Shown here one piece after another: positions 15,054 to 52,687 of a DNA stretch of 64,000 nt. Under the pieces are notes generated by a model, which did no database searches, was not told the origin of the DNA, and saw nothing but the letters and a program-made list of their open reading frames with translations. The stretch lies in sequence record MF459647.1. One strand, given 5' to 3'. The position numbers and the translations under genes were made by a program. Each line of letters opens with the position of its first letter. Position 1 is the stretch's first letter.

Positions 15054-15079
15054 TTTTCGTCTCTACATTACTTAGGTGA
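15054..15079 (+). promoter_or_regulatory. Conserved 26-bp motif copy 1 (putative early promoter)
   Basis: TTTTCGTCTCTACATTACTTAGGTGA aligns without gaps to five other intergenic copies. Confidence 0.65.
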
Positions 15080-15151
15080 TCTGTGTAATAAACAAAACCT
15101 TTGTCAGACCGGCTTAGGTTATTTCTTTTTAAGGTTAAGAGGAAAGATACC

Positions 15152-15499
15152 ATGACGATTAGAAAATGGCTCTCAGTAGCGCTGATAGCGTTTATGACGA
15201 TGTTTTGTATAAATGCGTCTGCTGAACAAAACACTGCGCCTGTAGATGTCCGCTTTGGTCATCAAACCGATCCGATAAGCGGCATGCAATATACAGTCGC
15301 TTACGTCACTGCGGTTAGCGATGATGTCGTACTCACCGGCATTCGCGTTAACCGAGGTAACTGCCGAGAAAGCGTCGGCAATCCCGCTGTACCAGTGTCC
15401 ATCTATTTTGGACAAACCGTCAAGTACCTGTATATGAAGTGTAACCGCATCATAGAAGCCGAATTACGTACGAACCATGGCGACTGGGTATTTAAGTAA
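15152..15499 (+). CDS. Small secreted/periplasmic protein with Sec signal peptide
   Basis: GAGGA RBS. MTIRKWLSVALIAFMTMFCINASA-E signal (A-S-A site). Two Cys in the mature beta-rich part (VNRGNC...KC). Confidence 0.7.
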   Translation: MTIRKWLSVALIAFMTMFCINASAEQNTAPVDVRFGHQTDPISGMQYTVAYVTAVSDDVVLTGIRVNRGNCRESVGNPAVPVSIYFGQTVKYLYMKCNRIIEAELRTNHGDWVFK

Positions 15500-15521
15500 C
15501 ACAATCAGTTAAGGAGACACA

Positions 15522-16040
15522 ATGGAGAACCAAGCGTTTTTAGACAAGTTCAATACTGTCGAAGATTTGCTGTCTACGGGTGATATGCTGCTTTACAAGT
15601 CTACGGACTGGGATTTAGCAGTAAAGACCCTACACGCCGCTGTCGTTCAACGTGTGGCCGCAGAACCTGATTTTGAAGTATGGGTCCCGTTACGCTATTG
15701 GCAATACGCAAAAAGCAAAGACCGGGCCGCTGGGTTATACATTGAAGTGTTTGATGTGTACATCAGCAACAAGGGACGCGTTTATAACCTGAATGGTAAC
15801 GACGGTAGTGAGCCGCATTTTGGTACCGAAGATAGCAACGGGTATAAAACGTTCTCTGTAACGGTAGATGAGAAGTCGAAGAGTCTGATGGTGGAACGTG
15901 CGGTCGCCTGCTGTTTCCTACCGATACCGGATGACTTAGCGACACACAAAATCATCGACCTGGAAGTGGGGCATCGTGATGAGGATCGTGCTAATAACGA
16001 TGTCATGAACCTGTTCTGGAAATTAACCAAAACCATGTAA
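15522..16040 (+). CDS. HNH-like protein, C-terminally truncated nuclease motif
   Basis: AAGGAG RBS. YISNKGRV...NGY...VERAVACCF...VGHRDEDRANNDVMNLFW, then a stop shortly after. Confidence 0.6.
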   Translation: MENQAFLDKFNTVEDLLSTGDMLLYKSTDWDLAVKTLHAAVVQRVAAEPDFEVWVPLRYWQYAKSKDRAAGLYIEVFDVYISNKGRVYNLNGNDGSEPHFGTEDSNGYKTFSVTVDEKSKSLMVERAVACCFLPIPDDLATHKIIDLEVGHRDEDRANNDVMNLFWKLTKTM

Positions 16041-16046
16041 CCACTA

Positions 16047-16074
16047 CCCTACCTTCCCAATCGGGAAGGTAGGG
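16047..16074. terminator. Bidirectional terminator between convergent genes
   Basis: CCCTACCTTCCC-AATC-GGGAAGGTAGGG. Confidence 0.8.
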
Positions 16075-16094
16075 ATTTCTCTTATGTTTATTTT

Positions 16095-17645
16095 TTATGC
16101 AGCTTCTCTGCTAAAATCATCCCAATCCGGAATTGAATTGCCGTTTTCATCAAGTCGGTGTTTCAAGCTCTTACGGTACGCTGGCTTACCGTTTATGTCG
16201 TGCACCAATCCCTTCTCTGGATCCAAGTCGTAAATACCAAAGCGGTCTTTCGGATCACACCCTTCCCCACGCTGCTTCCCTATTGAGAATGTCCAATAGT
16301 TCTTCAAGTCCGTCTTCGCCACGTGTATGGTGATTTCCACATCCACTTCGTTCGTTAACTTGGTTGAGGTTTCTGTCATGGACTTACCGGCCACTTCACG
16401 ACCAAAGTACACTTCAGACTCATCATCCGATTCACGCAGAATCTTCTTCGCTTCTGGACTCAACTGGTGAGGCGTCACGAAACAGATACCACGCGCCATG
16501 GTGAACGACCGCACCTTACGATAAAGCATCTGTAGCTTATCGCCTTTGGTGTCCCCGGTCATGCCTTCCAGTTCCATCATTGCCAGGTAGTCGTACGCCA
16601 GCAGAATGACTTCGTGACCTTTGAGTTCCAGCTTACGGATACGGTCACAGAACTTGTAGAAGTTATCTTTGTTGGGTTCAATCTGGTTGATGATTAAACA
16701 CCAGCCGTTCTTCTTGAAGCCATTAACGATGGTGTTAATGATTTCTTCGGCGGTACAGGTCATGAAGTCTTTCAACTCACCTGTCTCGGCCACACAGAAC
16801 AGTTTAAACATACGAACAATGATGAGGTCGAGGCTATCCTCAGCAGAGTCCAATACCACCGTTGGGATTTTAGACTTATCACGCAACAGGGGTTTGTTGT
16901 ACAGACCCACAGACGCTAACACATGACCCAGGGTAAACGATTTACCACGGTTGGTCAGGGCGTTAAACAGATAGAACTTAGCACGACGTAAACCCCCGTC
17001 CGGTTCCAGTGCTTTGTTCAAGCCCTGCATACCTAACTTAAGGATACCGTCCAAACTGGCTTCGGACTTCGCCTGACTGATAACCGACTCAAAGCTTTTC
17101 GGATCATCAGAGGTGACTGTCCCCACAACTTCGGTTTGTTTATCTTCGTTGAAGTTGTCGTTAATCTTTTCTTGAATCAGGTCCGACAGTTTAATCCAGT
17201 CTTCCTTCTTGAACTTCTTCACATCACCAAAGTGAAACTCTTTGATGGTCTTCTTGAAGTTCTTGCTGAAACTGCTGTCGGTGGCATTACGACGAATTTC
17301 TTTGATGTGCTTATAGATAATCTGACGGATACGTTCTTCGGACGCCACGTCTTCTAAGCCCAATTCAATCGATGTTTTCAATTCAGGTGCGTTGGCAGTG
17401 AAATCCATCACACGCTGCATTAACATTGATTTTATGATTGGCTCATCATCGGGCTGTTCCAGAATCCAGTCTATCGTCGCACGGATATCTTCCTCGGTCT
17501 TTTTATCTTGTATAAAAACTTCTGAACTGGAGATGGGTACGGTTTGTAAGAGATCCAACAGTTCATTTAACAGCGTCTTATCATTGATTCTTTTTACTTG
17601 GTAGATTGCTGTTAAGATTTTCACCAAGATGAGAAGATTACTCAT
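16095..17645 (-). CDS. dnaB: DnaB-like replicative helicase
   Basis: Walker A-like ALTNRGKS, SAED, YDYLAMM and FVTPHQLS motifs of SF4 helicases. Position next to the MCP as in phiKZ-like phages. Confidence 0.85.
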   Translation of the reverse strand: MSNLLILVKILTAIYQVKRINDKTLLNELLDLLQTVPISSSEVFIQDKKTEEDIRATIDWILEQPDDEPIIKSMLMQRVMDFTANAPELKTSIELGLEDVASEERIRQIIYKHIKEIRRNATDSSFSKNFKKTIKEFHFGDVKKFKKEDWIKLSDLIQEKINDNFNEDKQTEVVGTVTSDDPKSFESVISQAKSEASLDGILKLGMQGLNKALEPDGGLRRAKFYLFNALTNRGKSFTLGHVLASVGLYNKPLLRDKSKIPTVVLDSAEDSLDLIIVRMFKLFCVAETGELKDFMTCTAEEIINTIVNGFKKNGWCLIINQIEPNKDNFYKFCDRIRKLELKGHEVILLAYDYLAMMELEGMTGDTKGDKLQMLYRKVRSFTMARGICFVTPHQLSPEAKKILRESDDESEVYFGREVAGKSMTETSTKLTNEVDVEITIHVAKTDLKNYWTFSIGKQRGEGCDPKDRFGIYDLDPEKGLVHDINGKPAYRKSLKHRLDENGNSIPDWDDFSREAA

Positions 17646-17669
17646 TAGTTAACTCCAGGTGTAATAGAC

Positions 17670-18215
17670 ATGAAATTCGTTATTAGCCAGAACAATAAGA
17701 AGTCGGTATGGTTCTTGACCAAAGGTATGGTCGATGCGCTGAAAAGTGTAAGTATAGAATTTGACCAGTTAGACCAACTTCCGAAATTTACGGAGCATCT
17801 CACTCCCAGTGAGATTGCCAACATCCTTAAGCTACAAGATATTATAGCTGGTAAGTTCGGCGTGCCCATTCTGCCGCCAGTGCTCGATAATGTGGACGCT
17901 GTCAACAAATTACTTATCGAGAGAGCATTAAATACAGTGAGCAGTGAAGATTTACAACAACACTTCAGTGCACACAACAAATTCTATGTTCATACAACAC
18001 AAAACGGTTTCGTGCTGTGCTTGGCGAACAAAGATGAAACTGGGAGTATGCCCGGCTGGGAACCATTGGCGGCCGATACACTGGTTCCTGCCCTGCTGGA
18101 AGGACTCTATAAGAAATTTGGCTACAATGAGGTTCATTTCAAAGAAGTGACAAAAGCTTCAGTGAACGAGTTCTCATTAGCTAATATCTTTAATCTGATG
18201 GCTATTACTAACTAA
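17670..18215 (+). CDS. Hypothetical protein upstream of the major capsid gene
   Basis: 181-aa ORF with AGGTG RBS, divergent from dnaB. Confidence 0.7.
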   Translation: MKFVISQNNKKSVWFLTKGMVDALKSVSIEFDQLDQLPKFTEHLTPSEIANILKLQDIIAGKFGVPILPPVLDNVDAVNKLLIERALNTVSSEDLQQHFSAHNKFYVHTTQNGFVLCLANKDETGSMPGWEPLAADTLVPALLEGLYKKFGYNEVHFKEVTKASVNEFSLANIFNLMAITN

Positions 18216-18289
18216 GCCCGTTAGCAGTAGCGATATCATTTTATGTGCGCAAGCGCGAACAAATATATTTGTTTAAAGGAATTTAAGAA

Positions 18290-20473
18290 ATGGCTAAACT
18301 TATTACCGGTAAAGTGAATGGCGGAGCTAACCTCTTCCACGCTATTCGCTCCTCTCTTTCTCAGGGAACTCTGGGCACCATCCAGGGCACTGAAGGTTAC
18401 GGTAGCTTCGCTTCTGCACTGGATATGGTTTCCGGTCAAGAAGGCGCTGCGCTGAAATCTCAACTGTCCCAACTGAACGCGTCTAACTTCGACGCTTTCG
18501 CAGGCGCACTGCGCCGTAAAGGTACTCCGGCGAGTACTGAAGTCGAATTCCGTGATGCAATCGCTAACTTTAGCGCGCTGGCCGGTAACGAAGGCTTCTC
18601 TCTGCAGAACGAAAAAGGTTCCGAGCAGGACATCAAAGCTGTCAACCTGACTCTGAACGCCCAATCTCACCGTCAGACTGCCGCCGCTGAAGCGCTGTTC
18701 AAAACCATCACCGTTAACTACGAAGACGATGGCGCTGAGCTGGTTGTTCGTGCTGCTGGTCTGGGTAACTACGTTTACGGCGCGTCTGCATGGCAGTCCG
18801 CTTCTGAGCTGCGTCCGATCTTCGGTCTGCTGCGTACCGGCGAAATGTTCAAAGATGAAGTCCTGGCTCTGTATCCGGTCTACCCGACTGATGCCAACGA
18901 CGACAACCGCGAGCTGTTCGCTGAAGCTTCCTTCACTCCGGTGAAAGACGCAACCTATCCGCAGGGTGATGCCTACGGCCGCCAGGGTCACAAAACCCAG
19001 CAGCTGAAAGTGCCGGTTGTGGTTCCTAACCTGCTGGGTCTGTGCCAGGCTCCGGGTCAGCGCGCGTGGACTTCCACCGACGAGATCGAATCTAACTCCA
19101 TCACTGTACGTCAGGTTGGCGTGACTGCGAAAATCGGCGCTGCCGGTAGCACCACCGATGCTAACTTCTTCATCAACACCGGCTCCATGTCCAACAACAC
19201 CTTCGGTCCGCTGTCCACTGGTCAGTCTTCCGACGATCGTGGTCTGAACGCTCACATCCGTGATCTGCCAGCCTTCTCTGTTGTTGACAAAGACGGTAAC
19301 CCGGTTGGCGAAACTCTGTTCGCAGACTGGAAAGCTGCTGGGTACGAGCCGATGCTGACTCTGACCCTGGGCGGTAACTTCCAGCGCCAGACCAACGAAC
19401 TGCGTCTGAACCCGGGTTCTGTGACCATCACCGCTCTGCGTGATATCCCGACCGGTAACGTCATCAGCATCGGTAAAGCCGACGCGACTACCAAGCCGCT
19501 GTTCAAACGTCTGACCGCGGGTGTTGTAGCTTCTGCACTCCTGACCTTCAACGTCAGCAACACCTCTAACGGCAACTTCGGTTACCGCATCGAAGTTTAC
19601 GATGCGCGTAAACACCTGTCCGTTCGCCGTCGCTCTCCGGTATCTGTTAAGTACCCGGTCAGCAAAGATGACGTCAACTCTGAATCCCTGGATTACGCAA
19701 TCCAGCAGATGTCTGTTGTCATCAACAACCAGTGCTCCAAAGACGCGTTCGATGAAGCTGAAAAGCACCTCGAGTACATCACCAGCATCAACAACACGCC
19801 GGTCGTAGGTAACCACCAGGGTTCCAACATCCTGCCTGGCCAGCATTTCGTCACTGCAACTGCCGTTAATCGTAAGCTGAAACTGGCTGACGTAGTTTCT
19901 GCTGTTGGCAACAACGAAATCTTCGATGCGGTTTGTGCAGCTATCATCAACGAAGTGGCAGACATCACTGCTGCGCTGAACACCAAATCCGGCCTGGCAG
20001 CGATTTCCGAATACGGCAACGTTGACAAACTGGACTGGACCGTGGTCACTCACCAGAACCTGGCTCGTTTCTTCATCCGTTCTGGCGACGCGCGCACCAT
20101 CGGTGGTTGGGATTCCATCAAAGTTGAAGCGACTAACTTCGACTCCATGATCGGTAAAATCCTGATCGTTCCGCGTAACACCTCCAACGACGATTCCATC
20201 AACCCGCTCGGCGGCATTGGTGTGAACATCTCTAAAGAGAACATCGTTGTTCAGGGTAACGTGACTCGTGACCAGCAGGACTTCGGCGTCGTGATGACCA
20301 TGCCGACCTACCGCCACTGGCCAATCTGCCCGGTAATCGGTTCTCTGATTATCGAAGATGCCGATAAACTGCTGACCGACGAAGGTCTGATTTCTCAGCT
20401 GGCTAAACTGCGCGTGCAGGTTGCTAACGCTGCTGACATCGGCACCGGTGCAGGTACTGACCCAAACGCTTAA
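18290..20473 (+). CDS. Major capsid protein precursor
   Basis: 727 aa with extreme high-expression codon bias and AAGGA RBS. Propeptide carries GTE/GQE/GNE motifs. Size and position between dnaB and the RNAP gene match phiKZ gp120 / SPN3US gp75. Confidence 0.85.
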   Translation: MAKLITGKVNGGANLFHAIRSSLSQGTLGTIQGTEGYGSFASALDMVSGQEGAALKSQLSQLNASNFDAFAGALRRKGTPASTEVEFRDAIANFSALAGNEGFSLQNEKGSEQDIKAVNLTLNAQSHRQTAAAEALFKTITVNYEDDGAELVVRAAGLGNYVYGASAWQSASELRPIFGLLRTGEMFKDEVLALYPVYPTDANDDNRELFAEASFTPVKDATYPQGDAYGRQGHKTQQLKVPVVVPNLLGLCQAPGQRAWTSTDEIESNSITVRQVGVTAKIGAAGSTTDANFFINTGSMSNNTFGPLSTGQSSDDRGLNAHIRDLPAFSVVDKDGNPVGETLFADWKAAGYEPMLTLTLGGNFQRQTNELRLNPGSVTITALRDIPTGNVISIGKADATTKPLFKRLTAGVVASALLTFNVSNTSNGNFGYRIEVYDARKHLSVRRRSPVSVKYPVSKDDVNSESLDYAIQQMSVVINNQCSKDAFDEAEKHLEYITSINNTPVVGNHQGSNILPGQHFVTATAVNRKLKLADVVSAVGNNEIFDAVCAAIINEVADITAALNTKSGLAAISEYGNVDKLDWTVVTHQNLARFFIRSGDARTIGGWDSIKVEATNFDSMIGKILIVPRNTSNDDSINPLGGIGVNISKENIVVQGNVTRDQQDFGVVMTMPTYRHWPICPVIGSLIIEDADKLLTDEGLISQLAKLRVQVANAADIGTGAGTDPNA

Positions 20474-20556
20474 TCCCTTCAACCAACTACGGTCGTCTGG
20501 GTTAAACTCAGGTTAGTACCGGTTGAAGGGACTTCCCGCGTTTGATAAGTGATATC

Positions 20557-20591
20557 CTCTACCCCCTCCCTTAACGGGGAGGTGGGTAGGG
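20557..20591 (+). terminator. Terminator-like hairpin after the MCP gene
   Basis: CTACCCCCTCCCT-TAAC-GGGGAGGTGGGTAG followed by TTTATT. Confidence 0.7.
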
Positions 20592-20622
20592 TTTATTACG
20601 CAACTTTACTTTCCACAATATA

Positions 20623-20648
20623 TTTTTAAACCTACATTATTAGAGAGA
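20623..20648 (+). promoter_or_regulatory. Conserved 26-bp motif copy 2 (putative early promoter)
   Basis: TTTTTAAACCTACATTATTAGAGAGA upstream of the operon containing the nvRNAP subunit. Confidence 0.65.
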
Positions 20649-20709
20649 CTAACCCAATTATTGTTTAGCAATCAGTAGGCCACTGGTTGTTCTTTTGAGG
20701 TACCTCTCT

Positions 20710-21840
20710 ATGACATTAGATCATAATGACCACACTAACCCTATTTTCAGTTGGGTGGTGGTAAACAAAACCAATGAAAGCTTGTCGGCAAAATCTCGGG
20801 GTGGGTTTGAATACATCATTCCGTCGATTAACCGTGAGCGTGTAGTACACGATGGTGAAGTGAAGCTTATCGTGGAGTACAAGAATGTCTACATTGACCG
20901 GATAGCCTTCAACAAGTCTCAAGCATGCACCAAGCTGGACAAAACGTTGATTGACTTACTGGAAGCTCGCCGTCAAGTCATGCTCAATAATGAGTACCTT
21001 AACCGCAGCATGGTACAAACCATCAGCGTTGGGGTTATCCTCAAGACGGACCATGTCGAAAACGACGACGGTGTACACAGTGACATCTTGGGTGTAAGCT
21101 TCTTCATGGACAACAACCTGTCTCGTCAAACCTCTGTGGGTATTCCGAAAGGCACCCCCACCTCCATCAACAACAAACTGATGTGGGAAGAGAATTACGA
21201 GGGTGTGTTGCCGGATGCATCTGAATCAGTACGGGAACGCTGTATGACCGCAGAAACGCGTTTAACAGTGTTATATAACGACCCAACCAATATATTTAGT
21301 GGACTGTGGATGAACATACTGGGACAAGCCCGGTTAATCAATCGTACCCGTACCACAGACATCCAGCCAGGGCTGTATATCACCTACCGCTCTGGGTTAA
21401 GTAATAATGAACTGATTGAACGATACTATAGTTTCGACCAGCTTAATGACAAAGCTTTGGAAGAAATGGGAATCTTTCTCAGCAAAGAAGAAGCACAGAA
21501 AGGGGGTAATACTGAACGGTATTTACAAGCAGAAGCGACAATCAAATCGCTCAGTCAAAACATTGTTGGCTACCGTAAAGAAATCGCACAGCTTAATGAT
21601 AAAAACAGCAATTTAACAAAAGACCTTAATAAAGAGGAAACCACCAACCTGAGATTAGCAGCTGAAATTGCTTTCCTGAAACAGGATTCTCGATTAAAGG
21701 ACCGAGAACAGAAAATAGCGATAGAGACTATCAAAGGAGCAAACAAGCCGAACAACACGGCGAGCTTTGTTGATATCTGTAAGGGAGTCGGCCTGTTAAC
21801 CACAGCGGGGGTAACTGTTTATAAAGTATTCGCTACGTAA
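20710..21840 (+). CDS. Conserved hypothetical protein with C-terminal coiled coil and hydrophobic tail
   Basis: GAGG RBS before ATG 20710. Heptad region IKSLSQNIVGYRKEIAQLNDKNSNL. C-terminal GVGLLTTAGVTVYKVFAT. Confidence 0.7.
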   Translation: MTLDHNDHTNPIFSWVVVNKTNESLSAKSRGGFEYIIPSINRERVVHDGEVKLIVEYKNVYIDRIAFNKSQACTKLDKTLIDLLEARRQVMLNNEYLNRSMVQTISVGVILKTDHVENDDGVHSDILGVSFFMDNNLSRQTSVGIPKGTPTSINNKLMWEENYEGVLPDASESVRERCMTAETRLTVLYNDPTNIFSGLWMNILGQARLINRTRTTDIQPGLYITYRSGLSNNELIERYYSFDQLNDKALEEMGIFLSKEEAQKGGNTERYLQAEATIKSLSQNIVGYRKEIAQLNDKNSNLTKDLNKEETTNLRLAAEIAFLKQDSRLKDREQKIAIETIKGANKPNNTASFVDICKGVGLLTTAGVTVYKVFAT

Positions 21841-21858
21841 AAGTCGGAGATCCCATCG

Positions 21859-23514
21859 ATGGACCCAAAACTCTGGTCTCGTGTTGATACGAGCATGCCG
21901 CGATTTAATCCTGTAATCACGTCCGGGTTTCATCAGAAAGAGTGTGAGAATGGTGTGCACTTCTATGATTATTGCTTGCGTTTGATCTTTAAGAACATCG
22001 AACGTAAAGGGGTATTCTTTAAAGGGGTAACCCGTGTGCCACCAAAAGAGTTCGTGGAGTACCTGCAACGAACCAGTCACAAAGTCGCGGAAATTCATAA
22101 AGAGACACTGTATCCGGTGCGTCTCAACTTTGAATATCGTGACAAAGCCGGTCGTATTGTTCCGCTGAACCCTGTGTACATGATGCTGCCTTATTGTGAT
22201 ATTTACGGGGATACATACCTGCGTAACACACAGTACAGCTTCCAGGTGGTCTTAGCAGAACGCGGCCTGCCCGTTACTAAAGAAGAAGCTATCTTCGTGA
22301 AAGTGCTGGGTTTCAAATTCAAAATTGGAACTGAGTACTTCAAGTATGACCGCATCTTCAACGAAACGTCGAACAACATGGCAAGAACGCTGGACATCAA
22401 CTTACCGTCCAACCGTTTCTACAGTCCGTCTGAAGCACGCAAGATCAAAGACAACAAAACTCCCATTCCTTTATTGGCATGGTACGTATTTGCTGAAATG
22501 GGCTTTTCCAAGGCCATGGAGCAGTACGGTGAGTGTGAGTATGAGATCGGTGCACCAGAAGCCATTACGGATGAGTGTAAAGCTGATAGCCGCTGGGAAA
22601 TTATTACGCGCAGTAGCAGTACTAATACCAAGCGTCTGGGCGAATTCATTCCGCATGACTTAGCCATCGGCGTTCGTAACAAGAATGAACGACGTAAAGA
22701 ACTTTCCATTATGGGATTACAGTATGCCACCGCGCTGCTGTACGTCATTGACTGCTTGCCGTCGTATTTCGACATTGAGCGCATTGACGATCCTGATTAT
22801 TGGAAGCTGATTATTGGCCGGTGTTCGGTAAAACCTGGAGACAGCAACGAGTACATCATGCGCTTGATGCATGAGCACTTTGACTCCATGGACGAATACC
22901 TCGACGAGGATTCCATTAAGAAGTTTGCTAGTCAGTCTATCGTGGTCTCTAACATGTTCGATTTGTTCAACTACATCATTGCTAACCGCAGTGAGATTGT
23001 TCAAACAACTGATAGAGCTTCAATGTTCCATAAGGAAATTGCGAGCCTGGAGTTCGTCCTTGATAAACTGATCACTGCAGCAAACCAATTCAGACACGAC
23101 ATCAAAAATAACTCCGAACTGAGCCTCAATAAGGTTAACCGCCTCCTGACATCCAACTTCCGTATTAAAGAGATCGACAACGCCCGTACAGCGAACTTGA
23201 TCCAGGAAGCAACGCCGACCGACAATCCATTTGTCGATTACATGTTGGGTTGTATGCCGCAACACAAGGTCTACACCAATGGCATGAAAGGGAAAGGTAA
23301 TAAAGATTTTGATCCAAACGATTCAGCGACAATTACCCACGCATCACTCGCGTTTGTTAACAGCTTCCAACGTGTAACCAAACCCGGGCCGGATACGAGG
23401 GACTTCCTGAATCCGTGCGTGTTTTTGGTGAATGATCGCTTTACCGCTCTGAACCCTGAGCGCCGCGAGCTGTATGAAGCCACAGACAAGCGCCTTAAAA
23501 ATAGAGAGAGTTAA
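21859..23514 (+). CDS. Non-virion RNA polymerase beta-like subunit, N-terminal part (phiKZ gp123-like)
   Basis: 551 aa. The N-terminus (MDPKLW...MPRFNPVITSG) and C-terminus (ITHASLA...PGPDTRDFLNP) resemble phiKZ gp123 as I recall it. Syntenic position. Confidence 0.8.
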   Translation: MDPKLWSRVDTSMPRFNPVITSGFHQKECENGVHFYDYCLRLIFKNIERKGVFFKGVTRVPPKEFVEYLQRTSHKVAEIHKETLYPVRLNFEYRDKAGRIVPLNPVYMMLPYCDIYGDTYLRNTQYSFQVVLAERGLPVTKEEAIFVKVLGFKFKIGTEYFKYDRIFNETSNNMARTLDINLPSNRFYSPSEARKIKDNKTPIPLLAWYVFAEMGFSKAMEQYGECEYEIGAPEAITDECKADSRWEIITRSSSTNTKRLGEFIPHDLAIGVRNKNERRKELSIMGLQYATALLYVIDCLPSYFDIERIDDPDYWKLIIGRCSVKPGDSNEYIMRLMHEHFDSMDEYLDEDSIKKFASQSIVVSNMFDLFNYIIANRSEIVQTTDRASMFHKEIASLEFVLDKLITAANQFRHDIKNNSELSLNKVNRLLTSNFRIKEIDNARTANLIQEATPTDNPFVDYMLGCMPQHKVYTNGMKGKGNKDFDPNDSATITHASLAFVNSFQRVTKPGPDTRDFLNPCVFLVNDRFTALNPERRELYEATDKRLKNRES

Positions 23515-23516
23515 TA

Positions 23517-26057: not shown

Positions 26058-26068
26058 TTGAAAACCAT

Positions 26069-26100
26069 TACTCCTACCTCCTTAACGGGAGGTAGGAGTA
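26069..26100 (+). terminator. Terminator-like hairpin
   Basis: TACTCCTACCTCC-TTAAC-GGGAGGTAGGAGTA, then an AT/T-rich run. Confidence 0.8.
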
Positions 26101-26128
26101 TATTACTTTATTTTTTAAGTTACAGTTC

Positions 26129-26154
26129 ATTTCAAGTCTATATAACTTGGGTGA
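26129..26154 (+). promoter_or_regulatory. Conserved 26-bp motif copy 3 (putative early promoter)
   Basis: ATTTCAAGTCTATATAACTTGGGTGA, followed by the inverted repeat GAATAA...TTATTC. Confidence 0.6.
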
Positions 26155-26221
26155 ATAAATGAATAAGAAATTCATTATTCTTAACCTAACATAACCACAT
26201 TTAAATTAATGAGGAACTACC

Positions 26222-26593
26222 ATGACTACTTCTAACAACAACAACTCTTACAACAACACTGCTGACCGTGACTTCATGAACAGCAACAATTCTGGCTATG
26301 CACGTATCGCTGGCTTCGGTGGCGTTGCTCTGGCAGCTGGCCTGGGTATCTATGGCGGTAAAGACGTGGCAAGCGTAGTAATTGGCGCTGGCGTTGGCGG
26401 TGCTTACGCTTACCTGGTAGGCGGCATGGCTGATGGTATCGCACCATTTGCAGGTAAAGGCGGTCGCGTCTGCCTGGCTACTTTAGTAGCTGCTGGCGGC
26501 TTCGCACTGACAGCTGACATGATTCGCATGTGCGAACAGCTGACTACTGATGTAACCGGTAACGAAGGCGTTGCTGCTGACCCGCTGTTCTAA
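26222..26593 (+). CDS. Small glycine-zipper membrane protein
   Basis: GAGGA RBS. Asn-rich N-terminus, then three Gly/Ala-rich hydrophobic segments with GxxxG patterns. High-expression codon usage. Monocistronic. Confidence 0.75.
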   Translation: MTTSNNNNSYNNTADRDFMNSNNSGYARIAGFGGVALAAGLGIYGGKDVASVVIGAGVGGAYAYLVGGMADGIAPFAGKGGRVCLATLVAAGGFALTADMIRMCEQLTTDVTGNEGVAADPLF

Positions 26594-26599
26594 TACAGA

Positions 26600-26629
26600 A
26601 CTCCTGCTACCCTCATGGGTAGCAGGAGT
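26600..26629. terminator. Bidirectional terminator between convergent genes
   Basis: ACTCCTGCTACCC-TCAT-GGGTAGCAGGAGT. Confidence 0.8.
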
Positions 26630-41380: not shown

Positions 41381-41394
41381 TGTTCACTAATTAA

Positions 41395-41425: not shown

Positions 41426-41443
41426 CTAAAAGAGAATAAAGAG

Positions 41444-44962: not shown

Positions 44963-45010
44963 CTTTTATGGCCCACGCAGTCAGTGGGCCTGTTTCATGA
45001 GGAGTTACGC

Positions 45011-48000
45011 GTGATTATTATCGAGCGTTGGAAAGAACCTCCCGTTCTCGACACCCCCGAGCCGAAGTTTGGTGAGGTGATACGCAGCCTTAACGATTTG
45101 TTGTTTTTAGCCGAACAGCAAACCCAACAGTTTAATGCCAGCACCACCGCTAAGCTCGACACCATTAAAACCAAACTGACCCGTTTCAGTGTGGACCTGC
45201 CTGCACGTATTGATGTTCACTTGAACGGTAAAGGTGCGATGCACGGTGAAACCAAAAACACCATCGGGTTAAGTAAAGTCGACAACTTCCGTACAGCGAC
45301 GCTGACAGAACAACGCGACATGGTGGATGTGGATGCCCTGTGTACTCCAGCCGGTGTACAGGCCGCTGTAGACAAGAACAATTCGTTCCGTCAAGAAGAC
45401 TACCAAAAGAACGACCTGTTCCCATTTGGCAGTATTCATACCCCTGACCTGTACCCGCGTGTTTCCACCAACTGGAAGAACGTACCTTACTTCCAAAACG
45501 ATTACTGTACGTTGGGTTATCAAAACGACCGTGTCATTGTTTCCCCTAAACAAGACGCCAGCAAATACAGTGGGTTCACTGGTTTTGTATCAGACTCCTT
45601 GCAAGCAGCCTCGATGATGTTGCTGAACGAGCAGTCGGATATGGCGATGAGTTACCTGGGTGAAGGATGGGGAATGCGTGGAGCCCAGACGTCGGATAAC
45701 AAGGTTGCTGTGTTCCGTCCGCTGGCTAACCTGAAGAAATTCAACTACCCCAGTCAGATGAACCTGCCGGGCAGTAAAGCCTATATCCTGTGGGATGAAT
45801 ACATCACTGATTTGGTGCAAGGCTTCGCGGTGAGTGTGGATGTGTCCGGTAGCACGATCTCTGTGTACCATGACGTGTTTAAAGCACTTAACCCTACCAC
45901 TGACCCTACGTTAACTTCCGCGGTCTCCTTGGGGCTCTTAACGTCCTTAACGTGGATTGGTGGGTTGGACTTGGTACCGGTACGCGGCAGTCACGCCTAC
46001 AACCTGTACAACTTCATTGATGCAGACCCAGGTGTCACCATTGCGGTAAACCCAGCGGCGCGTATTAAAGTCAGTCCGACCTTGATCTGGGCAGTGCAGG
46101 ACAAAGAGATTTACGTCCACATTGCTGTGCCGGTTATTGTTGCGGCCAACGGTAAATCCAAAGAGTATGTTCTGCGGTTTACGGAAAGCTGGAACGTGGC
46201 AGGAATCAACAACGGGTCGCAAATCTCGACTACGCAGTTAGGGGTCTTAACCAAAGACTACGTTAACGCCAATCTGGAAATCCGTGACACACCCAAATGG
46301 ATGATGCCGTGTGACTGGACTGATGCACTTAACCCAGTAGGGTTGCCGGGTGTCTTCCTGAAATCTGGGTACGTTATTCAGGCACGTTCAACGAAATACG
46401 GTATTAAGGTCAAGTACTCGACCACGCCACTGAAATCCAGCCTGGAATGGATTAACGGTTACAAGACCGCGAAGAAACCGTCGTCTGCAGTAACCCGTAC
46501 CTTCTCTCCGGGTCGTTACCTGTCCTTTGGGGAAATCCCAGAACGTATCCTGCCGATGGATGTGTCTAACGGAGTTACTCGTTACCTGTCTTATCAAGAC
46601 ATTAACAAGAAGCACGGCTACGGTTGGACAGAACACACCTGGTTTAGCGACAAGGTGATGAAAGCAGGCAGTCCGGTGAACACCCACAGTGCGTTGTCTC
46701 CGGATAACTCCATTGTGTATGAGTTCAGTAATGACTTCAACAAATCCCTGGTAATCAAAGCCGGTAAAAATGGCGGGATTGCGACCAGTGGCATGGCCTT
46801 TACCTTCGCCAATGATTTTGTTGGCAAAGACGGGTTCAGCTACCAGAGCGGGATTGTGAAACCAGGGGTTGACGTGGCATTGGGTAAACCCATTATCGCG
46901 GCAATGCAGACCCATGGCCTGAAGATACTGAAACGCGCTGCAGCGCAATACGGTACCGGTTACGATGCGCGTAAATCTGAGCTGACTAACCAAGTCTACT
47001 GTTTCGACAACAGCAAAATCCTCGTGATTATCAGCGACGGTCTTGCTTACGCCGAAGCCGGCCTCTTTACCTACCGTATTGAAAACGGGGTATTGAACGC
47101 AGAGATTCCATTAACGGATGACCAGTTCTTCCGTATTACCGACAGCACCAAGCGACCGAGTTTGTTAAGTCGTACCAGTGCTACCGGTGATGGGGTCAAC
47201 CACCTGTTTGCGGATCTGCTCATTTATCAGGAAGATGATGACACGTTCCATGTCGGTGTACCGCGTGCCTTTGGTCATGTGTTTGGTGACCTGACGTTCT
47301 CTATCACCAACTACCGTACCAAACCGGCCTTCACGCCTCGTATCACGAACCCAGCGCGTCTGTACAGCAATGATTCGCCGATTGATGTGGTGGAAGAGCT
47401 CTATCCTCAGGTACTGGCTACAACCTTTGGTCTGTTCTCTTTCCAACCAAGCATTACGTCGGCGGTGCAAACACGTCTGCAGCAAGCAGGTGGGTCATTT
47501 ACCATGGATCCTTATCTGCCTCCAGATGCGTATTACTGTATCGTGCCAAGCGGGACCCGTTGTATTCTGGGTGGTCGTTCAGTTACTCTGGAACGCAGCT
47601 ACTACCTGCCGTTTGATGGGACCGACAATACGCACTTCTATCTGACCCGTAACGGTGACGATGTGCTGTTGGAGAAATCCATTGGGCTCATGGAACCGAG
47701 TAACAGTTCGGTGTTGTACGCGTACTACCATCCTGGTGAGCTGACTATCGTACCGTCGTATATCGTGTTGGATGACCACGTGCTGAGTTATGCTCGTCGT
47801 GGTTCGGCTATCCCTGTAACAATGGATACTGGCACGGCAATTGGTAGCAACGTGTTCTTCCGTCGTGGTGACGTTAACTACGTGGATGTTCCGGTTGCAC
47901 AGTTCGAGATGTTGGCGGACTACCATTACCGAGGCGAAGTATCGTTGCTGAACGGTAACATGACATTACGCTTGAGCTCAACGGTGGATAACGGCACAGG

Positions 48001-48313
48001 GACTGAGATTGATCTGATTACAGGTCAAACATGGACACCGGGTGTGCGTTATACCGGACCGGGTGGTAGCGAAGCAGGATGGAATACTTTGAATTCCTGG
48101 TCGAAGGTAATGCCTGGATTGGCTATCCCGAATATCCGGAACGCGAAGTCTGCATCGGTGCGTGTGGTGCCTGTTCGTGGTCGTCAAGGTGATGTAGCAG
48201 TGTTGCAGCAACCAACCGCAGCAAACAACTGGACGTTCATTACTGGTGGAACTGACTTACCGGGTGGAAGTGACAACTACATCTGGCAGGTTTATTTAAC
48301 CGTTAACTGGTAA
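45011..48313 (+). CDS. Large tail fibre/baseplate-appendage paralog 3 with extra C-terminal domain
   Basis: GAGGAG RBS before GTG 45011. HGETKNTIGLSKVDNFRTAT module. Degenerate copy of the shared C-terminal block, then about 130 extra aa. Confidence 0.65.
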   Translation: MIIIERWKEPPVLDTPEPKFGEVIRSLNDLLFLAEQQTQQFNASTTAKLDTIKTKLTRFSVDLPARIDVHLNGKGAMHGETKNTIGLSKVDNFRTATLTEQRDMVDVDALCTPAGVQAAVDKNNSFRQEDYQKNDLFPFGSIHTPDLYPRVSTNWKNVPYFQNDYCTLGYQNDRVIVSPKQDASKYSGFTGFVSDSLQAASMMLLNEQSDMAMSYLGEGWGMRGAQTSDNKVAVFRPLANLKKFNYPSQMNLPGSKAYILWDEYITDLVQGFAVSVDVSGSTISVYHDVFKALNPTTDPTLTSAVSLGLLTSLTWIGGLDLVPVRGSHAYNLYNFIDADPGVTIAVNPAARIKVSPTLIWAVQDKEIYVHIAVPVIVAANGKSKEYVLRFTESWNVAGINNGSQISTTQLGVLTKDYVNANLEIRDTPKWMMPCDWTDALNPVGLPGVFLKSGYVIQARSTKYGIKVKYSTTPLKSSLEWINGYKTAKKPSSAVTRTFSPGRYLSFGEIPERILPMDVSNGVTRYLSYQDINKKHGYGWTEHTWFSDKVMKAGSPVNTHSALSPDNSIVYEFSNDFNKSLVIKAGKNGGIATSGMAFTFANDFVGKDGFSYQSGIVKPGVDVALGKPIIAAMQTHGLKILKRAAAQYGTGYDARKSELTNQVYCFDNSKILVIISDGLAYAEAGLFTYRIENGVLNAEIPLTDDQFFRITDSTKRPSLLSRTSATGDGVNHLFADLLIYQEDDDTFHVGVPRAFGHVFGDLTFSITNYRTKPAFTPRITNPARLYSNDSPIDVVEELYPQVLATTFGLFSFQPSITSAVQTRLQQAGGSFTMDPYLPPDAYYCIVPSGTRCILGGRSVTLERSYYLPFDGTDNTHFYLTRNGDDVLLEKSIGLMEPSNSSVLYAYYHPGELTIVPSYIVLDDHVLSYARRGSAIPVTMDTGTAIGSNVFFRRGDVNYVDVPVAQFEMLADYHYRGEVSLLNGNMTLRLSSTVDNGTGTEIDLITGQTWTPGVRYTGPGGSEAGWNTLNSWSKVMPGLAIPNIRNAKSASVRVVPVRGRQGDVAVLQQPTAANNWTFITGGTDLPGGSDNYIWQVYLTVNW

Positions 48314-48319
48314 CAGACT

Positions 48320-48351
48320 CTACTACTCTCTCCGCAAGGAGAGAGTAGTAG
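48320..48351. terminator. Bidirectional terminator, GCAA tetraloop
   Basis: CTACTACTCTCTCC-GCAA-GGAGAGAGTAGTAG between convergent genes. Confidence 0.85.
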
Positions 48352-48361
48352 TTTATTCGTA

Positions 48362-49345
48362 TTATACTGGTCCGCCGGATTTATCGCTACCAGACTTAAC
48401 TCCGGTAGTAAGGTGATTGTTCAGACTAACATTAGAACGCACATCCGAAGCAGAGTAAATCTCTTCTGTGGATTTAATCCCACCTTTCTGGTCAATATTG
48501 CCGGTTAAGTCAATATCACCTTTCCAAGTTGTTTTCGGACAGTCAACATTCCAGGAGCTGGAGATTTGGAACTGGGTGTTCTTGGCCTGTACCTGCCACG
48601 TATCACACTGGATGTTTAACTTCTTGGTCAACAGGTTAATCTCTTTATCGGCGTTGAGATTAATCTTGTCCTTGGTGTACGCAGTCAGTACCTGCTTGTT
48701 GATGTTGAACACACTGCCGTCGGCGTTGGTATACGTCAGGCTACGTTCAATGTCATCCAGCACCAGATAACTCTTCTCTTTACCCCCCACCATAATCTTC
48801 CCGGCCATGGCATCGATCATGACTTCAAAGACGGTCTTCTCCTGGTTCTTCTGCGAGGTACGGAACGAGACCTTACCGGTGTGGGTAGAAATCATGAAGG
48901 TGTAGAAGTTATCAATATTGAAATCTTCTTTATCCGGGTCGGTGATGTTCTCATCGGTTGCCGGACTGGCACTCCACCCATACATAACCGTTTCCAGACG
49001 CATGGTCTTGGCGTTCATTCCCCAGGTGGTCCAGTAGTACTTCTTCTGACCGGTTACCTGGTAGATGCTTACCTCAGAGCCCTCACGTACATCGGGAGAT
49101 GACAGGCGGTTCGAGTCACCCATGGACTTCCAGAAAGCCGGCACGGCGTTACTCATTAAAACTTTACTGTTAACTGTATTACCTTGAGCATCCAAACTTT
49201 GTTTTTCTTGTTGCTCTGCGGTGGCTTCAACTTTACCATCCGCCATCGGGAACTTGCTGGGCAGGTAGACCATGATTTGGTCAGTGTTGGTGTTTTTGTT
49301 AGCCGCCACTATACCTGTCCCTAAGAATTGAATCATACTGCTCAT
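48362..49345 (-). CDS. Baseplate central spike protein (gp5/gpV-type)
   Basis: OB-fold-like N-terminus (PDVREGSEVSIYQ). Beta-helix-like repeats (INLNADKEINL..KLNIQC). Apex SLNNHLTTGVKSGSDKSGGPV. Divergent from sbcC as in phiKZ. Confidence 0.75.
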   Translation of the reverse strand: MSSMIQFLGTGIVAANKNTNTDQIMVYLPSKFPMADGKVEATAEQQEKQSLDAQGNTVNSKVLMSNAVPAFWKSMGDSNRLSSPDVREGSEVSIYQVTGQKKYYWTTWGMNAKTMRLETVMYGWSASPATDENITDPDKEDFNIDNFYTFMISTHTGKVSFRTSQKNQEKTVFEVMIDAMAGKIMVGGKEKSYLVLDDIERSLTYTNADGSVFNINKQVLTAYTKDKINLNADKEINLLTKKLNIQCDTWQVQAKNTQFQISSSWNVDCPKTTWKGDIDLTGNIDQKGGIKSTEEIYSASDVRSNVSLNNHLTTGVKSGSDKSGGPV

Positions 49346-49423
49346 ACGAATATCCCTAGGAATAATAAAAATAAACTAGCAAGCCATCTTATCATGGGCC
49401 ACTAAACTATAAGATTTCGTATC

Positions 49424-51883
49424 ATGATACTGAAACTCATCCTGGAAAACTACGTTCCATTAGCAACAAGCGGCATTAACAAAATCGAGCTTGACGTAAA
49501 CCACATCGTCAACTTGTTAATCAGTGTCAACGGCTCCGGTAAAACCAGTATTCTCAAAGAGATGAATCCACTGCCTCCGGACAACGCCAACTACAAAACA
49601 GGCGGCCGTAAATACATCTCGATAATGCACAACCAAAAACACTTTGTGCTGGATTCATATACCCACAAAGGTAACGGTCACAGCTTCAAGGTTGATAACA
49701 AAGAGATGAACGAAGGCGGCACGCTCACCGTTCAAAAGAACCTGGTGTTACAGTTCTTTAATCTCGACAACAACCTGAACAAAGTGTTGAGTGGGTTAAA
49801 AGTACCTGACCAACTCAGTGCCATGTCAACGTTACGCCGTAAAGAAGTCTTTATGCGTATCTACCCCAACAACACGGACTATGCGGTTGGGGTGTACAAC
49901 AAGTTAAAGGATGAACGCAACAGCTTAAAGGGTGCGATTAAGAATCAGGTTACTCGTTACGCCGAAGAGAACCGGAAACTGGAAACCCTGAGTGGGATGA
50001 CCATTGGGGAACTCGAAGACCAGGTAAAATACATCGAAGAAGAGCTCAAGCACGCGCTGCTGTTACGTGGCCAGTTAGAGAACGCTGAGATGGACCCGGA
50101 GATGCGTAGCAAGTATGACCAATTCAGTCGCCTGGTTGACAGCTTAACGTTGAACGTGGCGAAAGCCACCTCCATGAGTCACGAAGAGCTGTTACGTGAA
50201 GCGGCGCGGTTAGAGAACATGTTGGACTTTAACCTCAAGCACGCTGAGAAGTACACCACGTTGATTAACGAGTACACCAAGAACTTGTCAGGGTTAAGCT
50301 TAGAAGAGCAAGACCCGAAGAAGTTCAAGGACCAGCTCGAAATCATCAGTGATGAGTTGGTGCGGTTGAATGAGTCAGTTATTCAACATGGTGAGACGCT
50401 GAAAGCTTTCCCTATCTTTAATGACGGGGAAATGTACGAAGAGTTAACGGTGATTGCCGAAGACTTTACCAGCTACCTGCACCGTATTACGTTAGCCAGC
50501 TCACCCGAGTTAACCAGCGGTCAGTATAAGCAGTGGTTAGCAGAAGTCGAACAGATGAGTAACACCATTCGGTTACGTAAACAAGAACGTCAGCAGATTG
50601 CGCATCAGTTAAAGCACATGCAGCAGGCCGACGTGATTGAGTGCCCAGAGTGTACGCATAAGTTCAAACAAGGCATTACCCCGCAGGATATTGTTCGTGT
50701 GGAGCAGGGATTGATAGCCGCCGATAAGTTCATCGAATCTCAGGAAGCCAAGTTAGTGAGTTTGCAGAAGCAGATTGACAACGACGCCGACTGGTATTAC
50801 AGCATGAACCAACTCGCTAGCTTTGTGCGGGAAAACCAGCACGTTCGTGTACTGTCTACGTTGATGCGTGAATACAACCTGGGTAAAGATCCAACCGAAC
50901 GGTTGATTAACGGCCTCAGGATGCACTGTAATCGCGTTAAACTTATCAAACGTAGAAACGCCTTGATGGAAGAGGAAAGCGTCTTAAAAGGGCGTATACA
51001 AATCCTCGAAAACAATAATATGAGTCAGGCGCTGGAACAAATCCGGTGGGCCGAAGGGCAATTAGCTGACTTTAATCAGGGTATTCTGTTATACAGAGGG
51101 AAGTTGAAGGACGTTAATCGCGAACTTGAACTGATTCGTCGCCACGAAATTGATTTGGAAACACTGCTGTTCTTACGGGAAGAACTCTACTCAGGTTTTG
51201 TTAACCGAGCACGGGCTGAACTCCGTAACACAGTAGACAACATCATTACCACGCTGGGTCCACGTAAAGACCGTCACCTGGCCGACATTATTCGCACACG
51301 TTCTTTGAGTTCTGTTGTGGCTTCTATTGATGAAGATATTCAACGCTTAAAGAAACGATTAGTTATCGTTGAAACAGCCATGGATGGGTTGTGTCCGAAT
51401 AAAGGGTTAATTGGTAAACTGATGTCCGATTTCATTCAGGCCGTCTGTGGTAACATGAACGCCATCATCAAAGACGTTTGGAACGAACGCCTGCTTATTA
51501 AACCTTGCACGAAGGAGAATGGAGATTTAACGTATAAGTTCCCGGTGATAAACGGTGAAGATTCGGTTAACTCGGACATTGTTGATTGTTCGGCTGGCGA
51601 AAGTGAAATCATTAACTTTGCTTTCCGCTACGTCATGTTGCAATATCACGCTGACTATCCAATGTTCATGGATGAAGTCGGGGTATACTTCGACGAAATT
51701 AACCGCGGCCGTTTCTTTAACTTCATCAAGAACTATGCGTTGAGTGGCGACTGCACACAGATGTTTATGATCTCCCACTACGTTAACCAGTACGGCATAT
51801 TCAAAGACGCAAACATCATTGCGCTGAAGTACGACGGGTTGACGATTAATGGGGAAGTGAACAAGCATTCTGTCATACACTAA
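49424..51883 (+). CDS. sbcC: SbcC/Rad50-like ABC ATPase
   Basis: Walker A NGSGKTS, long coiled coils, CPEC zinc hook, signature CSAGE, Walker B FMDEVG, ISH motif. Confidence 0.9.
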   Translation: MILKLILENYVPLATSGINKIELDVNHIVNLLISVNGSGKTSILKEMNPLPPDNANYKTGGRKYISIMHNQKHFVLDSYTHKGNGHSFKVDNKEMNEGGTLTVQKNLVLQFFNLDNNLNKVLSGLKVPDQLSAMSTLRRKEVFMRIYPNNTDYAVGVYNKLKDERNSLKGAIKNQVTRYAEENRKLETLSGMTIGELEDQVKYIEEELKHALLLRGQLENAEMDPEMRSKYDQFSRLVDSLTLNVAKATSMSHEELLREAARLENMLDFNLKHAEKYTTLINEYTKNLSGLSLEEQDPKKFKDQLEIISDELVRLNESVIQHGETLKAFPIFNDGEMYEELTVIAEDFTSYLHRITLASSPELTSGQYKQWLAEVEQMSNTIRLRKQERQQIAHQLKHMQQADVIECPECTHKFKQGITPQDIVRVEQGLIAADKFIESQEAKLVSLQKQIDNDADWYYSMNQLASFVRENQHVRVLSTLMREYNLGKDPTERLINGLRMHCNRVKLIKRRNALMEEESVLKGRIQILENNNMSQALEQIRWAEGQLADFNQGILLYRGKLKDVNRELELIRRHEIDLETLLFLREELYSGFVNRARAELRNTVDNIITTLGPRKDRHLADIIRTRSLSSVVASIDEDIQRLKKRLVIVETAMDGLCPNKGLIGKLMSDFIQAVCGNMNAIIKDVWNERLLIKPCTKENGDLTYKFPVINGEDSVNSDIVDCSAGESEIINFAFRYVMLQYHADYPMFMDEVGVYFDEINRGRFFNFIKNYALSGDCTQMFMISHYVNQYGIFKDANIIALKYDGLTINGEVNKHSVIH

Positions 51884-51890
51884 CAATAGT

Positions 51891-51916
51891 TTTTCAGACC
51901 TACATTATTAGGCTGA
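51891..51916 (+). promoter_or_regulatory. Conserved 26-bp motif copy 4 (putative early promoter)
   Basis: TTTTCAGACCTACATTATTAGGCTGA upstream of the transglycosylase gene. Confidence 0.65.
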
Positions 51917-51988
51917 TAGAGGCAAGATTTAAGTGCAATATCCGAAGCAGTCTTGCCTCTAAAAACAAAATAGAGGAAACACCGTATC

Positions 51989-52687
51989 ATGTTCAAGTCA
52001 ATTCTTATCACTTTAGGGGTCGTTTTCAGCTTGATGGGCGCGCCAGCACTGGCTAGCACAAGCACGGCACACCCAGCCGAAATTAAAGGGTTCAATAAAC
52101 TCAAGGACTACATATTCGAGGCAGAACAAAAAACGGGGACGTCAGCCGAGTTGCTTACGGCCTTGTTAAGTGTCGAATCCACCATGGGACACAATACTGT
52201 TAACCGTCACAGCAGTGCGCGTGGGGTGATGCAGTATACCAGTAAAACCTGGCGGGCGGATTTAAAGAAGTACCATAAACAGTTGGGGTTATCAGCCAAT
52301 GCCTCTGTCACTAATCCACGTGCCGCTATTCTGGTCACGGCAGCAGCATTAGCCGATAATAAAGTTTACCTACAACGTAAAACAGGCAGAACCATCTCGA
52401 ACGGTGATTTATACATGTCCCATTTTGTTGGCCTAGGCGGTGCGGAGAAAATCCTACGAGGAGAATCTACCACTCGCGTGTCCAAACTGGTTACTGTACA
52501 CAGTAAGAATGGAAAGCGTTACCACGTCAAAGGTAAGGTTGCCACGGTCGCTCAATTCCGGGCAAAGATGAATACCTTAATTAAGAACGAGACACGTAAA
52601 TACGCCGTGGCTCTGGATCAAAGTCGAATGGATAACTTGATGACTGCTTTGAGTAACAACAAATCTTACACAGTGGCTTCACTGTAA
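51989..52687 (+). CDS. Lytic transglycosylase (SLT-like, endolysin candidate) with Sec signal peptide
   Basis: GAGGA RBS. Signal MFKSILITLGVVFSLMGAPALA-S. SVES catalytic Glu, SSARGVMQY, LYMSHFVG motifs. Confidence 0.85.
   Translation: MFKSILITLGVVFSLMGAPALASTSTAHPAEIKGFNKLKDYIFEAEQKTGTSAELLTALLSVESTMGHNTVNRHSSARGVMQYTSKTWRADLKKYHKQLGLSANASVTNPRAAILVTAAALADNKVYLQRKTGRTISNGDLYMSHFVGLGGAEKILRGESTTRVSKLVTVHSKNGKRYHVKGKVATVAQFRAKMNTLIKNETRKYAVALDQSRMDNLMTALSNNKSYTVASL

Follow-up and report, generated by a model that had tools for sequence, protein, structure and literature searches.

In phage phiKZ, differential RNA sequencing has mapped 32 early promoters, characterised by an extended -10 box and, upstream of -19, a T-rich element. 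The same work assigned this early motif to the primary transcription start site of PHIKZ054, the chimallin gene (PMC8244752). The early genes of phiKZ, to which those of the non-virion RNA polymerase (nvRNAP) belong, are transcribed by the injected virion RNA polymerase (RNAP) (PMC7598289). The paper describing the phages RisingSun and Joad gives only one motif, located within structural genes, and reports no promoters (PMC6034870). The present analysis concerns a motif of about 26-27 bp in Erwinia phage vB_EamM_Joad (MF459647.1) and three of the genes that it heads, gp79, gp87 and gp104. They lie in a window of 64,000 nucleotides that comprises bases 62001-126000 of the genome (genome coordinate = window coordinate + 62000; positions are those of the window unless the Joad genome is named). 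A first-pass annotation of this DNA had proposed that the motif heads a dedicated early regulon for envelope remodelling. Our analysis indicates that the motif is very likely the Joad equivalent of the phiKZ early promoter, recognised by the virion RNAP, and that the three genes are best seen as independent members of the general early class, with no regulon of their own. Early motifs in jumbo phages have reportedly been predicted before, by Lavysh et al. in 2016.

Joad, a member of the genus Risingsunvirus with a genome of 235 kb, is a phiKZ-like, nucleus-forming jumbo phage and is nearly identical to RisingSun. Window bases 14000-22000 match positions 76000-84000 of the Joad genome with 100% identity. 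It encodes a chimallin, gp28 (match to the PHROG family 'nuclear shell protein', E 2.5e-181), a PhuZ-type tubulin, gp17, and two sets of multisubunit RNAP genes. The Joad chimallin is 25-48% identical to the chimallins found in other phages, with phiKZ itself absent from those matches, and a sequence search of the PDB with gp28, gp84, gp86, gp231 and gp232 gave no matches.

A position weight matrix built on 18 motif copies and applied piecewise to the Joad genome at a threshold of at least 19 bits found 26 sites, compared with 0-1 per shuffle in 20 shuffled controls (mean about 0.1). The 26 sites share the plus strand, each lies just upstream of a gene, and eight of them were not in the seed set of the matrix. 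The consensus of the 26 sites is TTTTCAnnnCTAYATTAyTAnnGTGAAT. The first genes downstream are gp10, gp14, gp17, gp28, gp32, gp39, gp43, gp79, gp84, gp87, gp104, gp121, gp122, gp127, gp141, gp143, gp150, gp153, gp166, gp177, gp183, gp192, gp211, gp226, gp239 and gp240. Twenty copies lie elsewhere in the genome and six in the window, where a degenerate pattern likewise gave 6 matches against 1.24 expected:

15054-15080, plus strand: motif heading gp79-gp80; 27.0 bits; core CTACATTA at 15063, exact core match 15062-15080.
20623-20649, plus strand: motif heading gp84-gp85-gp86; 31.3 bits.
26130-26156, plus strand: motif heading gp87; 36.5 bits; core at 26138.
51890-51917, plus strand: motif heading gp104-gp105; 34.2 bits; core at 51900.
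62402-62427, plus strand: motif heading gp121; 28.5 bits.
63053-63080, plus strand: motif heading gp122 (HNH endonuclease according to the annotation); 36.1 bits.

The three copies said by the first-pass annotation to directly precede gp79, gp87 and gp104 are where it had placed them, with core-to-ATG distances of 89, 84 and 89 nt, respectively.

The Joad motif matches the phiKZ early promoters almost base for base. The sequence upstream of PHIKZ054 is TTTGAGATTTATATTACTAAATTGAAT, and a second phiKZ site, TTTCAGATTTATATTACTAAGGTGCAATAG, can be set beside the sequence upstream of Joad gp226, TTTTAAACCTATATTACTAAGGTGCAATGG. In both phages a T-rich box is followed by a nTATATTACTAAGGTG-like, AT-rich core, about 10 nt long and conserved, the number of copies is similar (26 in Joad, 28-32 in phiKZ), and copies are placed upstream of the chimallin and nvRNAP genes. 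They differ in that the core is often CTACATTA in Joad but TATATTAC in phiKZ, and in that the phiKZ starts have been mapped whereas the sites of Joad, a member of a distant genus, are known from the sequence. The motif heads the Joad genes of chimallin (gp28) and PhuZ (gp17), and the same motif lies upstream of the chimallin genes of Klebsiella phage Miami, Pseudomonas phage OBP and Aeromonas phage CF8. As the first-pass annotation had stated, the nvRNAP subunit genes carry it too: homologs of all four core subunits are inside motif-headed units, namely gp29 (PHIKZ055) in the unit of gp28, gp43 (PHIKZ071) and gp44 (PHIKZ074) in the unit gp43-gp44, and gp85 (PHIKZ123) in the unit gp84-gp85-gp86. 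gp85 matches PHIKZ123 in the phiKZ nvRNAP structure 7OGP with an E value of 3.2e-16. The second RNAP set, gp50, gp231 and gp232, matches PHROG RNAP beta families and is the candidate virion RNAP; the scan of the genome found no motif copy upstream of these genes. Virion RNAP genes are made late, so this absence is as expected. Because of the near-identity with phiKZ and the position of the motif at the head of the chimallin, PhuZ and nvRNAP operons, there is good inferential support for the earlier claim that it marks genes which the virion RNAP transcribes early.

Two other origins of the motif were considered: that it is a repeat spread by mobile elements, such as cassettes of HNH homing endonucleases, or that it is a sigma-70 promoter of the host. 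HNH genes do accompany three copies, those of gp80, of gp122 and of an HNH insertion with a duplicated core in a relative (L020). The majority of the copies, however, have no HNH gene nearby, every copy is oriented like its downstream gene, and the homologous motif of phiKZ is an experimentally mapped promoter. The sigma-70 reading was rejected: only about 4 nt separate the TTTTCA box from the AT-rich core, a spacing unsuited to such a promoter, and a sigma-70 scan flags none of the sites. Either origin is highly improbable.

In the best joint explanation, which we consider likely, the motif is the early promoter of Joad and RisingSun, and gp79-gp80, gp87 and gp104-gp105 are ordinary members of the early class. 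A multisubunit RNAP packaged in the virion would be injected along with the DNA and, with no phage protein yet made, would initiate a few bases past the AT-rich core. About 26 early promoters across the genome would drive the nuclear-shell gene, PhuZ, nvRNAP subunits, some HNH endonuclease genes and many small genes without assigned function. The three units gp79-gp80, gp87 and gp104-gp105 would be short self-contained early units amid later-expressed genes, and their products would probably be made early and then be directed to the envelope: the periplasm would receive gp104, a soluble lytic transglycosylase, and gp79, a disulfide-bonded immunoglobulin-like (Ig-like) protein, and gp87 would probably go to the inner membrane.

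Several points weigh against this explanation. Our search of the literature found no transcriptome of Joad, RisingSun or a close relative, nor of any phage carrying a gp104 ortholog, and the Joad transcription start site, its timing and the polymerase that would read it are taken from phiKZ. No recognisable motif precedes the gp104-type gene in phage SPLA10 or in four metagenomic loci (L032, L033, L034 and L035; the upstream regions of metagenomic loci were read by eye). The motif of gp104 begins only 6 nt past the stop codon of gp103, and a hairpin scan of the unit showed no terminator between them; read-through from gp103 may thus provide additional, later transcription of gp104. Finally, early transcription is no proof of early translation or export, and for gp79, gp87 and gp104 both export and an envelope role are inferred. 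gp79, gp87 and gp104 are nevertheless probably early genes, and the check on their orthologs proposed by the first-pass annotation found the motif upstream of orthologs of all three.

The motif copies also bear on some annotated gene starts and leaders. The GTG starts annotated for gp14 (Joad genome 12288) and gp32 (26541) are the GTG of the GTGAAT box of the motif and look wrong, and the annotation of the 33-residue gp9 (Joad genome 9004-9105), which a motif copy overlaps, looks doubtful. In the early 5' untranslated regions of gp10, gp28, gp87, gp121 and gp150 a hairpin (z -1.8 to -5.1) has the conserved GTGAAT(AA) box as its 5' arm; in the window it is found at 26150-26185 (gp87) and 62420-62450 (gp121). 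The hairpin is confined to this subset, and the mean z across all 26 leaders is -0.6. A second conserved element, CTATTATATGTAAA-like, occupies the divergent spacer upstream of the chimallin gene and adjoins the divergent virion gene in four of four phages, Joad (L003:21582-21815), Miami, OBP and CF8 (L026, L027 and L028). Since it contains TATG, the core of the phiKZ late promoter, it may be a promoter for the nvRNAP.

The notion of a dedicated envelope-remodelling regulon did not hold. The same promoter class heads 26 units, and most of the first genes are cytoplasmic or unassigned, including replication and transcription genes, a GroEL-like chaperonin and an HNH endonuclease. A hydropathy scan identified about 18 membrane or secreted proteins among the 245 Joad genes. 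Five of the 26 first genes (gp79, gp87, gp104, gp143 and gp166) are directed to the envelope, compared with 13 of the 219 other genes (Fisher p=0.03). The enrichment is weak, and the predictor behind it is crude. A long block of small genes, gp123-gp193, encodes most of the predicted membrane and secreted proteins. This block (Joad genome 126000-168000, plus strand) includes the SPFH lipoprotein gp132 and the DUF1190 lipoprotein gp154 and carries nine of the 26 motif copies.

The gp79 unit comprises the following features:

15009-15036, plus strand: terminator-like hairpin upstream of the gp79 promoter; 11-pair stem, then a T-rich tail.
15152-15499, plus strand: gp79, small protein predicted to be secreted; signal peptide, two conserved Cys, Ig-like beta-sandwich.
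15522-16040, plus strand: gp80, HNH endonuclease; phrog_17657, E 5e-83.
16047-16074, plus strand: terminator-like hairpin closing the gp79-gp80 unit; 12-pair stem with 8 GC pairs.

As the only terminators are upstream of the motif and after gp80, gp79 and gp80 are predicted to share one transcription unit. The 115-residue gp79 has a signal peptide with n-, h- and c-regions that ends in ASA (the signal peptides of gp79, gp104 and their orthologs were judged by inspection and a Kyte-Doolittle scan). Its family has 16 members, from jumbo phages of Aeromonas, Klebsiella and Erwinia and from a few bacterial records. Besides a VNRGNC motif and another conserved Cys, the members have either a signal peptide or a lipobox. 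In the alignment of the 16 members (A2) C71 is invariant and C97 is present in at least 90%. The description of gp79 as a Sec-exported disulfide protein thus agrees with its ASA-type signal peptide and the two family-conserved Cys. The AlphaFold model (predicted local distance difference test, pLDDT, 83.9) is all-beta and forms a small beta-sandwich, for which Foldseek found only generic Ig-like folds in the PDB (best E 0.068); Pfam gave no match. gp79 can be placed, from these features, in a putative periplasmic two-cysteine Ig-like family whose function is unassigned. An assignment as an inhibitor of lysozyme or lytic transglycosylase of the MliC/PliC or Ivy type was rejected, given the lack of a Pfam match and of a fold match (Foldseek E at least 0.068). 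A gp79 ortholog 66% identical in the metagenomic relative L022 retains both the motif and the order gp78-gp79-gp80, and the CF8 homolog of gp79 lies second in a unit headed by the motif.

The 297-nt spacer between gp78 and gp79 (14855-15151) contains a strong fold at 14880-15046 (-54 kcal/mol, z -4.96), which may be a structured 3' untranslated region or a small RNA; it has no Rfam match, and the Rfam scan of the whole window gave none. HNH genes travel with copies of the early promoter: gp80 (15522-16040) in the gp79 unit, gp122 (63053-64000) with a copy of its own, and, at L020:3031-3907 in a metagenomic relative, an inserted HNH gene that separates the orthologs of gp86 and gp87 and is preceded by a second motif core.

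gp87 forms a single-gene unit:

26069-26100, plus strand: terminator-like hairpin between gp86 and the gp87 promoter; 14-pair stem.
26222-26593, plus strand: gp87, small Gly/Ala-rich helical protein.
26600-26629: hairpin downstream of gp87.

In the 123-residue gp87 an Asn-rich N-terminus is followed by Gly/Ala-rich segments of borderline hydrophobicity (Kyte-Doolittle segments 49-67 and 83-101, scores 1.64 and 1.83). AlphaFold models the protein, with low confidence (pLDDT 45), as three helices. Of the earlier description as a Gly-zipper membrane protein, the Gly/Ala-rich, borderline hydrophobic segments stood and make insertion into a membrane plausible; the glycine zipper did not stand, as no Pfam family and no glycine-zipper match was obtained even at E values up to 10 and the GxxxG-like spacing is visible by eye only. 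Membership in the glycine-zipper or a TraT-like Pfam family was rejected, the matches being at noise level. gp87 has only 5 relatives among 1.84 billion representative proteins and is known only from Risingsunvirus-like phages. The orthologs are 78-97% identical and keep both synteny and motif; in three of the loci (L019, L020 and L021), where the proteins are 78-88% identical, the motif core is identical to that of Joad.

The third unit comprises:

51989-52687, plus strand: gp104, lytic transglycosylase with a predicted Sec signal peptide; Pfam SLT, gp144-like catalytic domain.
52776-53063, plus strand: gp105, small conserved cytoplasmic protein; phrog_16812, E 2e-43; probable true start 52806.
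53074-53102: terminator after gp105.

The 232-residue gp104 has a signal peptide of the cleavable type that ends in ALA, and it matches Pfam SLT (PF01464) with 34.6 bits against a cut-off of 21.3 (E 1.6e-8). Its catalytic domain is related to that of the phiKZ endolysin gp144 (PDB 3BKH/9XPS; E about 4e-10), with VES of gp104 aligned to IES of gp144 at the Glu-Ser motif, and the catalytic Glu and the preceding Ser are invariant in seven orthologs. A PG_binding match, the N-terminal domain of modular endolysins, was not found in the Pfam scan. These features bear out the prediction of a Sec-exported lytic transglycosylase and identify gp104 as a putative family-1 (SLT) enzyme.

Homologs of gp104 are present in 241 phage records. 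In a scan of IMG/VR for relatives, most matches were SLT domains that form part of large tail or virion proteins, and only seven loci had true orthologs, that is, short proteins with a signal peptide. The gene order is as in Miami: an SbcC-like gene, a small inserted open reading frame (ORF), the SLT gene, a small ORF and, further on, a ligase gene. All six GenBank orthologs have a signal peptide of the A-x-A type and five of them a small downstream gene. The early motif precedes the SLT gene in six of eleven orthologs checked, those of Miami, Survivor, Yubaba, OBP, AhC3_1 and pEt-SU. The first five, which span Petsuvirus, Miamivirus and unclassified Aeromonas and Pantoea phages, combine the signal peptide with a cognate motif 60-90 nt upstream and a gp105-family ORF downstream; in pEt-SU the signal peptide and the motif were both seen. 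In the alignment of the gp105 family (A4), which contains Joad and five other phages, gp105 follows the SLT gene. The gp105 orthologs start at the internal MTKQ, position 52806 of the window, and the annotated start at 52776 looks wrong. In the gp104 leader (51918-51982), TCTTGCCTCT (51951-51960) can pair with either AGAGGCAAGA (51918-51927) or the Shine-Dalgarno region (51971-51982), an alternative that could be a translational switch. The Miami SLT leader, unlike that of Joad, has a hairpin followed by a T-run.

The homology of its catalytic domain to gp144 raises the question of whether gp104 is the lysis enzyme, a Sec-exported endolysin that would be stored in the periplasm and restrained until late in infection, and no early remodelling factor. 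Several orthologs are annotated as endolysins, and read-through from gp103 could supply later expression. Arguing against this possibility, the N-terminal domain of gp144 binds peptidoglycan, whereas gp104 has a Sec signal peptide in its place; moreover, the gp104 gene follows an early promoter, belongs to no lysis cassette and has no evident holin or spanin gene adjoining it. Its signal peptide and those of its orthologs are of the cleavable A-x-A type and do not resemble signal-arrest-release sequences. Joad has a separate candidate, gp233 (Joad genome 219775-220647), with two N-terminal peptidoglycan-binding repeats as in the endolysins of phiKZ and EL, and the RisingSun counterpart of gp233 was detected in lysates by mass spectrometry (PMC6034870). 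The neighbourhood of gp233 likewise showed no recognisable holin or spanin genes. Because of gp233 and the detection of its counterpart, gp233 is likely the true endolysin of Joad and gp104 is probably not the main lysis enzyme. Phage OBP, in which the gp104 ortholog is OBP_149, presumably has a different, characterised endolysin, gp279, and we count this on the same side. That gp104 is a periplasmic endolysin is accordingly improbable.

gp104 can also be compared with VirB1, EtgA and other specialised lytic transglycosylases that serve secretion, conjugation or flagellar systems in the periplasm and open the wall locally without lysis. Like these, gp104 is predicted to be a small Sec-exported SLT enzyme; unlike them it is phage-encoded and has no known partner machinery, and the likeness rests on the shared SLT fold.

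A rival reading, after the first-pass annotation, is that gp79, gp87 and gp104 form a functionally linked early set that would act together on the envelope soon after injection, in superinfection exclusion, envelope-stress control or remodelling. All three are predicted to be early and directed to the envelope, and the mild enrichment of envelope-directed first genes points the same way. gp79 and gp87 diverge faster (65% and 71% amino acid identity) than their neighbours (77-82%) while their promoters are conserved, a pattern that fits genes in conflict: the spacers that contain the promoters of gp79 (14855-15151, compared with L022) and gp87 (26058-26221, compared with L019) are 94% and 88% identical in nucleotides, against 73-77% for coding DNA. 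There is also an analogy with the immediate-early superinfection-exclusion genes imm and sp of phage T4, whose products act at the inner membrane (Imm) and, by means of a signal peptide, in the periplasm (Sp); here as there, small early phage proteins are, by prediction, bound for the inner membrane or the periplasm. No sequence or fold similarity to Imm or Sp was found, however, for gp79 or gp87, the fold search being that of gp79 against the PDB. Family searches of the Joad genes gave no homology to exclusion proteins of the Imm/Sp type, and family and fold searches found none to Ivy, MliC or PliC. The promoter is generic, the three genes are never adjacent, no functional tie among them emerged, and many other genes of the early regions likewise encode membrane proteins or lipoproteins. 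Their spread also differs greatly, gp104 occurring in many genera, gp79 patchily and gp87 only in Risingsunvirus-like phages. The conservation of a predicted early exported SLT-gp105 module across genera would fit ideas of an envelope function as well, but no function is thereby shown. A linked set of the three genes is therefore doubtful, and three independent members of the general early class is the reading that we retain.

The Joad units recall the morons, or autonomous single-gene transcription units, described for phiKZ (PMC10914365). They resemble these in being short, in having their own promoter and terminator, and in being embedded among unrelated genes. They differ in base composition, for which a foreign character was looked for in gp79, gp87 and gp104 and not seen (GC 0.47-0.54 versus 0.48), and in the synteny of gp104 across genera, on account of which gp104 is not a recent insertion.

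What was proposed as a regulon is thus the general early gene class, and the motif itself is of a known type, the phiKZ-type early promoter, here for Joad. Nucleus-forming phages as distant from one another as those of Erwinia, Klebsiella, Pseudomonas and Aeromonas have kept the sequence of the phiKZ early promoter. It was further considered that the chimalliviruses of the RisingSun, Miami, OBP, Petsuvirus and Aeromonas-phage clades share an early module, consisting of the promoter, an exported gp144-like SLT enzyme and gp105, that would remodel peptidoglycan in the first minutes of infection, with gp79 and gp87 as lineage-specific additions to an early envelope programme. This idea is tentative and, on present evidence, rather unlikely. 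The words peptidoglycan, periplasm and transglycosylase are all absent from a 2025 review of nucleus-forming phages (PMC12908238). If the idea is true, the module might block superinfecting tails, repair or enlarge the entry site, or permit a change of cell shape around the phage nucleus. Joad and RisingSun gain a map of 26 predicted early promoters, where their published description reports none (PMC6034870). With this map early genes become predictable from sequence and several annotated gene starts are corrected, and it singles out a conserved candidate early function, the exported lytic transglycosylase, as a modest lead.

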